A stretch of DNA of 64,000 nucleotides from Zygnema circumcarinatum SAG 698-1b (GCA_037447605.1 CM074812.1:310001-374000), one strand, 5' to 3'; positions 48,901-54,900 are shown, numbered from the stretch's first letter. Notes: generated from the letters alone by a model not told the origin. Numbers and translations are program-made.

Positions 48901-51900
48901 GCTGCTGTGGGAGAGGGAGAGGTGAAGGCGATAAAACGGACAACTGAGGCTCCATGTAAAATCAGCAAAATGTGCGTGATCAAAAAAATCCAAAAATGGG
49001 CTCCTCCGTCAGATAGTGTGAGGCCCGTGATGAAGTATATAAGGATTGACCAAATTACGGCCTGCGGGAGAAATTATAGCACCTTCCAAGTAAGAATGGA
49101 TTCCTCTTCTTCTCTCCCTTTCCTCCCTCTCACCTTCCCCTCCACCCACCTTTCCCTCTTTCCCTCACCTGCCCTCTCTCCCTCACCTCCTCCCCTCTCT
49201 CCCCTCCTCTCTCTCTCCCCCCCCCACTCCTTCTCCACCTCCCCATTCACACCACGTACCCGCCCTCTCCCTGCCACCTCTCCCCATCACCCTCCCTCCC
49301 CTTCCTCCCATCCCGCCTCCCTCCTTCCCCTCCCCCTCCTCCCTCCCTCACTCTCTCCAGTCCCTCTCCCCTCATCCCCATTTGACATCTTCCTCCCCCT
49401 CCCCCTCCTCCCCTCCTCCCCTCCTCCCTCCCTCCCCTGCTTCCCCTCCTTCCCTCCCTCCCCTCCCCACCCCTCCCCCTCTCCCTCCCTCACCTCTCCC
49501 TCCCCTCTCCTCCTCCCCATCCCCACTCCTCCCCCTCCCCACCTCCCTCCCCTCCTCCCCTCCCTCCCGCTCCCCCTCCCCTCCCTCCCTCCCCTCCCTC
49601 CCTCCCTCCCTCCCCTCCCTCCCTCCCTCTCTCTCACCTCCGCTATAGAGTAGGCGCCCCCCCCACAAAGTGTGCGCAGAAGAAGGCCGAGGGGCGGAAG
49701 AATCGCGCGCTCGCCTGCTTGCGGAAGGCGGCGCGCTCCTCGAGGAAGGCGGGGAGCTGCCCCGCGCTGCTGAGGGTCATGGCGACAAGGGAGGTGAAGC
49801 TGATGGCGCGGCGGAGGTTGAGGGCGGTGAGAGTGAGGGAGGAGGACATCAGGAAGAGGTTGGTGCTGTTGAAGAGGGCCATCATATGACTCTGAGGGAG
49901 GAGGGGAGGGAAGGAGAGGGAGAGGGGGGGAGGGGGGAGGGGGGGAGGGGAGGGGAGGGAGGGGGGAGGGGTGGGTGGATGAGTGGGTGGATTTGAGGAA
50001 AGGGGGAGAGGGAGAGGGAGAGAGTGGGAGGGGGGGAGGGGAGGGGAGGGGAGGGTTTGGTGGATGAGTGGGTGGATTTGAGTCAAGGGGGGGAGGGAGA
50101 GGGAGAGATTGGGGGAGGGGGGAGGGGAGGGAGGGGGGAGGGGAGGGAGGGGGAGGGTTTGGAGGATGAGTGGGTGGATTTGAGGCAAGGGGGAGAGGGC
50201 GAGGGAGAGAGTGGGAGGGGGGAGGGGAGGGAGGGGGGGGGGGGAAGGGTTTGGAGGATGAGTGGGTGGATTTGAGGAAAGGGGGAGAGGGAGAGGGAGA
50301 GGGAGAGGAAGCGGGGGAGGGAGCAGGAGGGGGAGAGAAAGGGGGAACGAGAGCGGGGAAGGGTGAGGGAGCGGGAGTCGGGGCGGGAGTGGGAGAGAGA
50401 GAGAGAGAGAGAGAGAGAGAGAGAGAGAGAGAGAGAGAGAGAGAGAGAGAGAGAGAGAGAGAGAGAGAGAGAGAGAGAGAGAGAAAGGGAAAGAGAGAGA
50501 GAGATAGAGAGAGAAAGGGAGAGAAAGCGAGGAAGAGGGTAGGCTTCGGTGGATGTGAGGATTGATCTTCGTCAAAAGGGGAAGGAGGGGAGGGGGAGTT
50601 CGAGGGGAGAGAGGGAGAGCGATAGAGAAGAGGGAAGCGAAAGAGAGAGAGAGAGAACGAGAGAGTAGAGAGATTTGGAGGGAAATACCTGCGCCAATCT
50701 TGCTCCAAGCTGAAATTTGTTCCTCCACAAAACCTTGTTTTGCCGGTGGAGCAAAACTTTGAATTCAGACCACCAACCAAGCACATACTCTCGCTCAAAC
50801 TGCTCTTTGTATACCCCCTCAGTCACCTGCAATTTCACCTCAAGAAAACAAAGCAAAAGGGATAAGAATATGTGATTATATTAAGCCTCTTTTCCTTCAT
50901 CCTCTGTGAAAAAAACTGCTTCAACTATACCGCCACTTGCAACACAACATGCTTACTACATAGTGCAAAAGAGATACATTACTGCTTGTTTATTCTTCGC
51001 ATTATCTCACAAATACTTCAAAAAAATACGGAATAGTTAGGCAAAATTTACAACGTACCGGTTCCAAATCACGCTCGAATTGTACTCTTGTTATTGCATT
51101 TTCTTCTTTTAACAAAGTAAAAATTTCTTGAGATGAAAGGGTTCCTCCAAAGCAGGAGGCATATTGCATATCCCCTCCCTTTCTTGTTACTCCTATTAAA
51201 ACATCTCCTGCTTGAAGCTCCGATGTGCGTAAAATTGAAGGTTTTGTATATGGCAAGTTTGAATCTCTTGATACAACAATTGCTCGGTCAGATGCATTTG
51301 ATGGGTCCGTTCCGTTGCAGAGTTGAGGCTGCCTGTAAGAGCGGGGCGGAACATTCAAATAAATTTATTAGCAAAGAAAAAATAGAAAAACCGAGCGATT
51401 ATTATTAGGGGCAGGGGGGACGAAGGGAGGCAAACAAGAAAAAGAGAGGGAAAGAGGGGGACCGAGAGAGAGAGAATGGGAGTGAGAGAGAGGGAGAGAG
51501 AGAGAGAGGAAGAACGAGACGGAACGACAGAGAGAGAGAGAGAGGAAAAGCGAGAGAGGTGGCGAGACAGAGAGAGGGCAAGAGAGCAAGCGAGATAGAC
51601 GGCGAGAGATCTACAGAGAGCGAGAAAGAGCGAGCGAGATAAGATGGATAGAGAGATGGACTGAGTGAGAGAGACAGAGACGGAGAGAGAAGGCGAGGGG
51701 GACGGCGAAAGAACACGAGAGGGAGTAAGAGAGACGTGTTAAAGTACAAAATCCTCGCTAAAAATGGCACAGAGAGAGAGAGAGAGAGAGAAAGAGAGAG
51801 AGAGAGAGAGAGAGAGAGAGAGACAGAGAGAGAGAGAGAGAGAGAGAGAGGGAGAGGGAGGGAGAGGGGGAGAGGGGCAGAGAGAGAGATAGAGTGTGCC

Positions 51901-54900
51901 TGAGTGGGATTGCTTCCAGCTTGACTCCTTCCATAGAGTGGGGTCCATCCACCCATAGCTGCTGCCTGCGGGAGGGACTCTCTACCACTCTCCTCACATC
52001 GCGGTAGTGTTCCGATCTCTCATAGGCGGAAGCTACAACCCCATCTCAGCCAAACAAAAAATAAGAAAAATAAATACAAAAACAGACAGGGAAATAGAAC
52101 TACAGCTCGAGAAATCCGTGAGTTGAAACAATGGAAACCACGCAAAACAAAGGGGGGGGGGGGGAGAAGAAAAAGAGAAAGGGAATGTTTTTGGCTGAAG
52201 AAAGAGGATGGGAGGGAGGGAGAGAGGGAGGGAGGGAGGGGGAGAAGGGAGAGGAAGCGAGAGAGTGGGAGAGAGTGAGAGATGCCGAGAGAGGGCGGGA
52301 GAGGAAGAGAGAGGGAGAGGGAGAGGAAGAGAGAGAGGGGGAGAGAGGGAGGGAGAGAGAGAGAGAGAGTGCCAGTACCGAAGTCCTCCAAAGTCATCGC
52401 TTGAAATCCTTCCTGGAGAAATCTCCTTCCAGCTGAGGAGGTCACCTCAGTCAGAAATTCCGGAAAGTTCATTTGCCGTGGTTTTACATACCTACCCAAA
52501 CCTCACACATTCATAAATCCGTAGAACCCTAAAAACAATAAAAAAAACTCAGAACACTAAAATTTTAACAATCTACCGATCCAACCGATCCCTTCAATCC
52601 CTCTCCAAAAACGAAACGACAAACGAAAGTATATACTTCACCAGTAAAGAAATGTCAATAGAAAACTCAATAAAATGACAGATGTAATAATACAGCATTT
52701 GCCCTAAAAACCCTTAAAACCCTAAATTAAAGTATAGGAGCTTTACCCGAGTTTCTCGAAATGCATGGCCGCGTCTTGGGTCGGACCTTGGTACATGATT
52801 TGACCAGAATTCATGACTAAGACTCGGTCAAACAAGTCATAAATTTCCTGACCAGGTTGAACCAGGGAGCAGCAAACTGCGGTTTGCCGGACCCGAGTGA
52901 AAATTCGAATCATTGCTAAAATTTCATAGGTGACTGCTCCGTCAAAAAATGGGCTGATTTGGTCAAAAAAAAGCACCTGCACCACCGATTTAGAGACACT
53001 TTTCAGGTTTGTAAAGGCTTCAAACCCTAAAACAAGCTTCAAATTGTCAAAAAAAAATGTCAAATTTCATTCATTTCATTGTTGTTAACAGAAAGAATAG
53101 TAAGAAAAACTCGAAATCTTACCCCATATACTCCCACCATTAGCTCAGCCACTGTCAGCCGATGTCTCTCCTCGGGAGTTATTGTACATTGAGTTGGTTT
53201 TCCAACCAAAATTTCGGCACATTTTTTTAAGCCCAACATCAATATTCTGCTTTCGAGCATTGGGTCTTCTCCCTCTATCGATGTCTGTGCGAGAGTGTCA
53301 CGTAACGCTCTCACTTCATCCATTGCTCTTATATTCGCTCCGTTTGTAAAACTTCTCGCGAATTCAAGAGTTTCTCGGACAGTCAGAGTGCTTAAATGGG
53401 TATCACATTGGAATCCAACTCCTGCAACTTTATATATGTTGATTTCGTTTAACGGATTTCCGTTATATGAGATGGAACCGGTGGAGGGTTTGACTCGCCC
53501 AGCAGCTACTTTGTGGAAAGTCGACTTTCCGCAACCTGCATGCTTGAAAGGAGGGGACGGGTAAGTGGGGTTTCACTTTGGGAAGGGAGCATTCAAAGGG
53601 GGTAATTGAAATCAGTGCTTCGATTCATTGAAGATCAGCGGCGTATAAGTACGGATTTCGACTTCTAGTATGTGATGTGGAAGCTAAGAATTGAAACTTC
53701 CTATTGACAGGTTTCGTTGTAATTGTGAAGGAGAAATGAGGGAAGAGATGAGGAAGGACGATGCAAAGAGAGAGAGAGACAGAGAGAGAGAGAGAGAGAG
53801 AGAGAGAGAGAGAGAGAGAGAGAGAGAGAGAGAAAGAGAGAGAGAGAGTGAGAGTGAGAGTGAGAGAGGGAGAGAGAGAGAGAGAGAGAGAGAGAGAGGG
53901 CTAACCTGCAGGTCCTAATACCAGGGTCATACTCCCGGGCATCAAATACCTGATCGCCCGCAAACCCAAAAATACACAAAACAAACCCAACATTCATCTT
54001 ACGGAAAAAAAAAAAAAATGAAACGTCAGAGATGACAACAAAATCTCATGCAACAACAGAAACATGCTCTCCTTAGAGATATTTCTCATCAAATTGGTAT
54101 TGTTCGGACATAGATTTCGAGGATTAAAATTATCGAGGAGAGAGATGTGAAGAGAGAATCAGTACTCACCCTGTGACGCTCTTTAAAACATCCACTGACT
54201 TTTTCTTCGGTTTCAAAAGTAGCGATTTCAGCCAATGCAAGCCCTGACATTGGGGAGGAGGGGGAGAGAGAGAGAGAGAGAGAGAGAGAGAGAGAGAGAG
54301 AGAGAGAGAGAGAGAGAGAGAGAGAGAGAGAGAAAAAGAGAGAGAGAGAGAGAGAGCGAGAAAGAGAGAATGAGAAGTGAGAAAAGAAGAATGGTTACGG
54401 CTCTATGATAACAGAAAGGTAAAACAAGATAGTTCACAGGAAAAACTAAGTTTGATAAAGAAAACTTATGGCCTGTTCTCTCACAAAGAGGAGTGAAAAT
54501 TTTATGGGCTTACCGCCGTTGCAAAGTTTTCGTGCCCTGACCGGCCAATCAAAGCCTCCAAAGTGAAGGACACGTCTTGAAGCTTCACAATCTGCAGGCG
54601 AAAGAGAAGAAACAAGGGGAAAAAAATGCACAAAATGTAAATACATACAAACAAATATATGTTAAAATGCATGTCATATTATGCATATAAACAAACATGT
54701 AACACGAAAATTGAAATTCTGTTAAAAAAATCGAATGTTGATCAGATTTATTTGAGTCGCTTTAACGCTTCTTCAGCTTGCTCTTTGAAGTTCAGAAGGG
54801 TCTCCATTTATAGCCGACTTCAATTCACCCATTTGATTACCTTTCTGATTTAGAATTTGTAGCTCAACAGGTAAATTAGTTGCTGCTCATCATACCGAGA

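Follow-up and report, generated by a model that had tools for sequence, protein, structure and literature searches.

Transporters of the ABCG/PDR type, a group of ATP-binding cassette (ABC) proteins, play a central part in the defence of plants, in the formation of the cuticle and in the export of hormones. The linker between their nucleotide-binding domain (NBD) and transmembrane domain (TMD) is usually seen as a loose tether, and in ABCG structures the segment from the NBD to the elbow helix is a flexible cytosolic linker beside the NBD-TMD transmission interface. Another ABC protein, CFTR, is regulated via the external PDZ scaffolds NHERF1 or CAL. Here, we analyzed 64,000 nt of the genome of Zygnema circumcarinatum SAG 698-1b (GCA_037447605.1 CM074812.1:310001-374000), referred to below as the window, with coordinates counted from its first letter. 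On its minus strand, the window contains a gene of many exons, whose introns are rich in CT microsatellites. This gene encodes a divergent, probably full-size ABCG in which an extra module occupies the cytosolic linker from NBD1 to TMD1. The best explanation overall is that this module is real, old, approximately 115 residues long and probably PDZ-like, and that it has a docking or regulatory role; we assign this reading as a whole a probability of roughly 0.6.

The protein resembles full-size ABCG/PDR transporters, such as Arabidopsis ABCG36/PEN3 and yeast Pdr5, in its reverse domain order (NBD1, TMD1, NBD2), the presence of ABC_tran and ABC2_membrane domains and the conservation of the helices that follow NBD1 and precede the first transmembrane helix (TM1). 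The signature motif of NBD1 is degenerate, as PDRs show in one site. In contrast to PDRs, the Zygnema protein carries the insert of approximately 115 amino acids between NBD1 and TMD1, and both catalytic glutamates are replaced in Zygnema and Closterium. Furthermore, the orthologs P0003 and P0005 from Closterium and P0007 from Spirogloea muscicola lack PDR_assoc (PF08370), ABC_trans_N (PF14510) and PDR_CDR (PF06422) in precomputed Pfam lists, whereas land-plant and fungal relatives have such regions. Identity to land-plant PDRs is approximately 27% (Closterium P0003 versus Alnus P0008), and TMD2 was not found in the Zygnema window, which contains a 100-N gap at 45536-45635.

The insert itself shares with PDZ domains (PF00595, PF13180, PF17820) its size (approximately 90 to 115 amino acids), a predicted order of strands and helices that fits, and a G-D-x-hydrophobic motif in register; nearly all of its best structural matches and language model neighbors are PDZ domains. 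It differs from them in lacking a profile match and a conserved GLGF-type loop, in a long loop between strands B and C and in its location, which is inside a polytopic transporter instead of a soluble scaffold or protease. As in CFTR with NHERF1 or CAL, an ABC protein and a PDZ fold would come together at the cytosolic face of the membrane, and the CFTR-related PDZ structures 1i92 and 4e34 were among the Protein Data Bank (PDB) matches of the insert model. However, in CFTR a separate PDZ protein binds the C-terminal tail of the transporter, whereas here the PDZ-like module lies within the transporter chain. The exons and the intron discussed below are as follows, with the supporting evidence in parentheses.

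53906..53993, minus strand: NBD1 exon that ends with the first half of Walker A (translation, splice sites, alignment to the Closterium and Spirogloea orthologs)
53121..53535, minus strand: NBD1 exon carrying the remainder of Walker A (CGKST) together with the Q-loop region and a signature that is degenerate, replacing SGGQ (Pfam ABC_tran, RNA joint 52974/53121, alignment)
52747..52974, minus strand: NBD1 exon with Walker B, then Gln in place of the catalytic Glu (VLFFDQIS) (flanking RNA joints, alignment with the Alnus PDR)
52379..52491, minus strand: post-NBD1 exon (RNA contigs, tblastn with Spirogloea P0007, frame check)
51900..52032, minus strand: first insert exon, with the conserved post-NBD helix and then the start of the insert, comprising putative strand A (QLWVDGP), a loop and strand B (X3 record 11, X4 record 17, X2 record 6; translation; ortholog alignment)
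51333..51899, minus strand: GC-AG intron full of CT microsatellites, within the putative loop between strands B and C of the insert (X3 record 11, continuous over the junction; junction bases)
51059..51332, minus strand: second insert exon (91 amino acids), with putative strand C (RAIVVS), the G-D motif strand, helix B and the last strand (TRVQFER) (splice sites, RNA contigs at a depth of approximately 280, ESM features, AlphaFold2 secondary structure)
50689..50826, minus strand: pre-TM1 exon, the usual beginning of the ABCG membrane domain (RNA joint 50824/51057; aligns to Closterium, Spirogloea and Alnus)
49652..49890, minus strand: TMD1 exon, ABC2_membrane (Pfam, tblastn, loose end of RNA contigs)
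48549..49064, minus strand: TMD1 exon, C-terminal half of ABC2_membrane (Pfam, tblastn with P0003 and P0007)
46000..48212, minus strand: NBD2 exons, with the Walker motif at 48074-47979 and Walker B followed by Ala at approximately 46122-46000 (Pfam ABC_tran start, tblastn)

Conservation of the insert in three genera

A first-pass annotation of this DNA had proposed that two exons (52032-51900 and 51332-51059) add an extra domain of about 100 amino acids between NBD1 and TMD1. The placement was borne out, as ABC_tran lies upstream and ABC2_membrane downstream of the segment and the land-plant and fungal PDRs retrieved here lack it. The extra segment is likewise real, but its length is closer to 115 amino acids (SRRQQLW...FERDLEP), and alignment with a land-plant PDR shows the first approximately 20 residues of exon 52032-51900 to be the ordinary conserved segment that follows NBD1. 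The insert thus has the conserved post-NBD1 helix on one side and the pre-TM1 helix on the other. In a four-way alignment with Zygnema, Closterium and Spirogloea, the Alnus PDR has a gap of approximately 115 columns exactly at this site, and the land-plant and fungal PDRs retrieved by a search with P0003 show no similarity to the insert.

With the 91-amino-acid exon as query, no true relative was found among 1.84 billion representative proteins, in a collection of 5.8 billion clusters or in metagenomes. The two matches that phmmer returned from the 1.84 billion proteins were FG-GAP-type or other repeat proteins summing repeat scores and were rejected as spurious, and metagenome scans with the single sequence and with an alignment gave no match. 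The stop-free reading through TMD1 and NBD2, in turn, identified the partial Closterium protein P0003, whose locus in strain Naga37s-1 (L001) contains an unannotated NBD1 upstream of the gene model. In this locus, the insert is a single exon (L001:9289-9701) that follows the same post-NBD exon, lacks the intron present in Zygnema at 51333..51899 and aligns to the two Zygnema exons from AYERS to QFERP. P0003 as query retrieved proteins of Closterium NIES-53 and NIES-54 and the 1,562-amino-acid P0007 of Spirogloea muscicola, which carries the insert at approximately residues 498 to 596. The insert is therefore present in three Closterium strains (Naga37s-1, NIES-53 and NIES-54) and in Spirogloea muscicola, and it is old, occupying the same position in at least three genera (Zygnema, Closterium and Spirogloea). 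The protein search with the second exon had given no relative because the Closterium insert DNA sits upstream of truncated gene models. The Closterium models P0003, P0005 and P0006 all begin inside TMD1, and the N-terminal region, NBD1 and the insert lie unannotated just upstream (L001 7200-10000; L004 and L005 upstream of 10001). In a test of synteny, tblastx of the Closterium neighbors (Med6 and others) against the window yielded no match.

Identity between Zygnema and Closterium falls from 46% in NBD1 to 24% in the insert, with the C-terminal half of the insert at 29%; across the three orthologs, identity in the insert is 20 to 24%, compared to 38 to 46% in NBD1. Positions invariant in the three genera include the Trp of strand A, the G-D pair, a Tyr-Ala pair and the Q-x-E-R of the last strand. 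Within Closterium, a hand count from the alignment gave approximately 6 synonymous versus 4 non-synonymous changes in the domain. The P0007 model (approximately residues 570 to 625) lacks about 12 residues at the position of helix B and part of the pre-TM1 helix (LHRQ..RN). This shortening is probably due to mis-splicing in the annotation, and the shorter Spirogloea domain may not be real.

Fold of the insert

The first-pass annotation had assigned the segment to the PDZ fold from the order of its elements, which is plausible, and every peptide string that it quoted occurs in the spliced translation. Whole-domain tests of this assignment used the single-exon Closterium ortholog, while Zygnema was tested via the 91-amino-acid exon. 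The G-D-x-[IVL]-[IVL] strand motif is aligned in the three orthologs (one reads VKEGDRVVAV), with a helix and the last strand predicted downstream. In hhalign comparisons with a PDZ profile built from seven Escherichia coli PDZ domains (DegP, DegQ, DegS and RseP), the G-D motif, proposed earlier as diagnostic, did fall in register with IKAGDVITSL of DegP PDZ1 (P = 0.0018). ESM-Atlas features point the same way. Among the top 100 for all three orthologs, PDZ, PDZ_2, PDZ_6 and GRASP PDZ-like were almost the sole named families, the exception being one viral SAM_TNK cluster at rank 65 for Spirogloea. Zygnema, Closterium and the Spirogloea part reached best scores of 0.95, 0.92 and 0.78, respectively, and the same unnamed clusters recurred in all three.

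Structure comparison was based on an AlphaFold2 model of the Closterium domain built from a three-sequence alignment (predicted local distance difference test [pLDDT] score, 46; predicted template modeling score, 0.48). The top 50 PDB matches obtained with Foldseek were mostly PDZ domains, at E values of 1 or worse. A VIA search of 48,161 chains, independent of Foldseek, returned PDZ domains for 48 of the top 50 (Z scores of 3.5 to 5.3, with 44 to 82 residues aligned and spanning the whole model), and a second look with VIA returned 50 of 50 (Z scores of 3.6 to 5.1). These scores are unimpressive alone; the evidence lies in the uniformity of PDZ domains among the matches. Overall, the insert probably has a PDZ-like fold. 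It would at best be a highly diverged, noncanonical PDZ and not a demonstrated member of the family.

Several results weigh against this interpretation. Pfam PDZ, PDZ_2 and PDZ_6 gave no match with either the Zygnema exon or the whole Closterium domain at E values of up to 10 (hmmscan), P0007 had no Pfam PDZ match at E values of up to 0.01, and neither a single sequence nor the three-ortholog profile matched any PDB sequence. The hhalign probability was just 15%, for a local alignment of 10 to 18 columns that covers the motif only. The models are of low confidence (pLDDT scores of 50.5 for the second Zygnema exon as a single sequence and 46.4 for the Closterium domain), strands B and C were not predicted in the Closterium model, and when the second exon was modeled by itself from a single sequence, Foldseek gave meaningless matches and no PDZ domain. 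The VIA scores of 3.5 to 5.3 are below the 7 to 8 that is this tool's typical best for unmatched models. AlphaFold2 and ESM may both key on the short G-D motif and hence would not be fully independent. The GLGF-type loop, for which the first-pass annotation had nominated SMEGVKL, did not hold up, as the corresponding residues are AKLVLTR, without any Gly, in Closterium and PPGIEL in Spirogloea. Finally, in Closterium NIES-53 and NIES-54 the domain contains a 1-bp deletion as well as a stop codon. Two weak hits from these searches were also set aside: the three-ortholog hidden Markov model matched only beta-catenin among PDB sequences, at E values of 0.4 or worse and thus by chance, and a Rho_RNA_bind match in Pfam (E = 0.18) was dismissed as weak.

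The lesion in NIES-53 and NIES-54 (L004 at approximately 9480; L005 at approximately 9367) combines the deletion with a substitution, GGACCAGCC -> GGA-TAGCC, so that IWISG is followed by a TAG and a frameshift. The change could be genuine, reflect an unrecognized splice or stem from an assembly error common to both.

Part of this contrary evidence would be expected if the insert were a folded, lineage-specific domain of some other small beta-rich fold, with the PDZ signal being an artefact of the G-D motif in both deep-learning tools. Every sequence-profile search was negative, hhalign matched the motif only, Z never exceeded 5.3 and model confidence was low, with the 40-residue N-terminal half of the Closterium model unstructured. 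However, three orthologs that share just 20 to 24% of their insert residues reach the same PDZ clusters, the structural matches cover model residues 1 to 112, including the N-terminal strand and therefore extending beyond the motif, and no other fold family recurs in the top 50. We consider another fold unlikely.

If the PDZ-like fold is accepted, the insert might also act as a canonical PDZ that binds C-terminal peptide motifs, as in metazoan scaffolds, and tethers the transporter to the tail of a partner. The best structural matches were indeed canonical eukaryotic PDZ domains (MAGI, GIPC, Dishevelled and syntenin), and a G-V pair occupies the loop position in Zygnema. Against this, the orthologs do not conserve the carboxylate-binding loop, which lacks Gly in Closterium, no conserved basic residue precedes the loop, the first residues of helix B differ among the orthologs, and PF00595 is not matched. 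The C-terminus of the Spirogloea transporter (..NRQT) is neither a class I nor a class II PDZ ligand. Canonical peptide binding is thus distinctly unlikely.

A third alternative is that the insert is merely an expanded flexible linker, mostly disordered and without a function of its own, that is tolerated in the naturally loose NBD-TMD linker of ABCG proteins. This would agree with a pLDDT that is low throughout, with the lower identity in the insert than in NBD1, with the annotated Spirogloea model being shorter in this region and with the frameshift within the insert in one Closterium species. However, three genera retain the hydrophobic patterns of the strands and several invariant positions, the composition is not of low complexity, synonymous changes exceed non-synonymous ones within Closterium by the hand count, and for two species the predictors put regular strands and a helix at positions that align. 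The chance that the insert is such a linker therefore appears slim.

Transcription and splicing of the insert exons

Contigs from four public runs of the same organism were placed on 50500-53500. Three of the runs (X2 to X4) were RNA-seq-like, with exon depths of approximately 160 to 390 and intron depths of approximately 0 to 57. In these three runs, the contigs place both insert exons at exactly the coordinates proposed in the first-pass annotation. A 523-nt contig (X3 record 11; depth, 283) runs unbroken from 52033-51899 into 51331-51057, in agreement with X4 record 17 and X2 records 4 and 6, and X4 record 15 joins 51057 to 50824, tying the second insert exon to the pre-TM1 exon. The introns upstream of the insert exons were confirmed by RNA joints at 52488/52744 and 52974/53121. 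Depth in X2 was equal for the two insert exons (232 to 388) and the flanking exons (264 to 295). No contig in X2 to X4 skips either insert exon, although contigs cannot exclude rare isoforms.

Exon 52032-51900 is preceded by a TAG acceptor and ends in a GC donor (AG/GCACAC), and exon 51332-51059 has a canonical AG acceptor, a GTACGT donor and a frame that continues into the next exon at 50826. The intron at 51899..51333 is accordingly GC-AG (AG/GCACAC...ACAG/G) and RNA supported, while GT-AG borders were found for the five further introns checked in this region. When the seven exons are joined at these junctions, they form one open frame of 467 codons without a stop. Both insert exons are thus real, spliced together and to both neighbors, and included at the depth of those neighbors. 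That the exons are mis-modeled or normally skipped, leaving a mature protein without the insert, is hardly credible, despite the noncanonical GC donor of the first exon and the lack of its junction in the joint table (from which rows near repeats were dropped), because contigs of three runs cross the junction at full exon depth, the frame is kept over four junctions and orthologs encode the same segment. The segment is more than a product of chance, given that it is transcribed, keeps the frame and is conserved in two genera besides Zygnema.

Catalytic motifs and proposed role

NBD1 of Zygnema combines an intact Walker A (GPAGCGKST) with a degenerate signature and a Walker B that is followed by Gln (FFDQ; 52950-52975), where the Alnus PDR reads FMDEIT in alignment with VLFFDQIS. 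In NBD2, Walker B is followed by Ala (FFDA; 46000-46122). Across the orthologs, the Walker B Asp and the following residue are DQ and DA in Zygnema, DH (FDH; L001 8781-8810) and DT (LDT) in Closterium, and DE and DE in Spirogloea P0007. The NBD1 signature is degenerate in all three, with TPEE, TKDE and TAGE in place of SGGQ. On the basis of these residues, a hydrolysis-competent site (Walker B Asp and catalytic Glu) would be present in neither NBD of Zygnema or Closterium and in both NBDs of Spirogloea. The dead ATPase sites reported in the first-pass annotation are therefore supported for Zygnema, and extend to Closterium, as far as replacement of both catalytic Glu residues is concerned, but they are not a feature of all insert-bearing proteins. 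As Spirogloea keeps both residues, the domain is not generally linked to "dead" NBDs, which is a further point against the interpretation favored here. Since both catalytic Glu residues are replaced in Zygnema and Closterium, their protein may be a slow or non-hydrolyzing ATP switch instead of a pump.

Of the possible roles of the module, docking of a partner or regulation is the likeliest, and we put it forward tentatively. The module would lie beside the NBD1-TMD1 transmission interface and work there as a docking or regulatory unit. Its ligand could be a peptide strand from a partner or from the transporter itself, or possibly the head group of a lipid, and binding could set the location of the protein or the ability of the NBDs to close. 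In Zygnema and Closterium, this may take place in an ATP switch of the slow or non-hydrolyzing kind. As the carboxylate-binding loop is not conserved, noncanonical binding is likelier than binding of C-terminal peptides.

The first-pass annotation had gone further and suggested a membrane scaffold or signaling module, a role that remains conjectural. A more far-reaching proposal is that streptophyte algae near to land plants converted a full-size ABCG into an ATP-binding, non-pumping membrane receptor or scaffold whose PDZ-like module recruits signaling or cortical partners, and this we regard as quite unlikely.

Gene structure and assembly

Pfam and tblastn show the order NBD1, TMD1 and the start of NBD2 in the window, and both halves are present in the ortholog P0007. 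ABC_tran (PF00005) was matched on 53533-53123 (E = 2.8e-6; 28.4 bits against a cutoff of 25). ABC2_membrane (PF01061) was matched on 49064-48549 (E = 2.3e-13; 50.6 bits) and, under the cutoff of 26.9 bits, on exon 49652..49890 (E = 1.1e-4; 22.3 bits). In tblastn searches with P0003 and P0007, no exon for the rest of NBD2 or for TMD2 was found anywhere in the 64-kb window. Together with the 100-N gap, the missing exons for the second half of NBD2 and for TMD2 make the gene look truncated in the assembly. An intron between the NBD2 exons is filled by more than 1 kb of nearly perfect CT/GA dinucleotide repeat (46826-47980), which yields a spurious stop-free frame of 721 amino acids.

RNA contigs from three runs extend from 50826-50689 into sequence coding for IVLMALFNGT, from which the window exon differs at 7 positions in 30 nt. 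The disagreement between assembly and RNA contigs concerns the first approximately 25 nt of exon 49652..49890 (49866-49890). A chimeric assembly was suspected from this mismatch. However, the exon is present in 20 runs, both DNA and RNA-like, and each of them carries the same 0.91 share of its sampled words, so a chimeric gene was rejected in favor of a small local difference between assembly and reads. The mismatch is likely a local assembly or polishing error beside a low-complexity intron.

Novelty and implications

ABCG proteins and PDZ domains are themselves well known. What is probably new is a full-size ABCG with an embedded PDZ-like module that is conserved in Zygnema, Closterium and Spirogloea. 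The literature yielded nothing relevant that joins PDZ with ABCG or ABC2_membrane, an absence limited by InterPro not being covered, and none of the 24 homologs from the P0003 search has a PDZ Pfam domain. The claim in the first-pass annotation that a built-in PDZ is without precedent among ABCG/PDR proteins thus agrees with the literature consulted, but the insert is not unique to this gene, being shared with Closterium and Spirogloea.

The truncated Closterium gene models, with their N-terminal half missing, hide this architecture from searches of protein databases. Closterium and Spirogloea are zygnematophytes, and the conserved folded module shows that, in algae among which the nearest relatives of land plants are found, the NBD-TMD linker can accommodate a domain for regulation or docking. 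With both catalytic Glu residues lost in two of the three insert-bearing lineages, these proteins provide a natural test case for the conversion of an ABC pump into a switch or scaffold. If the receptor or scaffold reading were true, the protein would be an ABC-derived signaling platform with no described counterpart.

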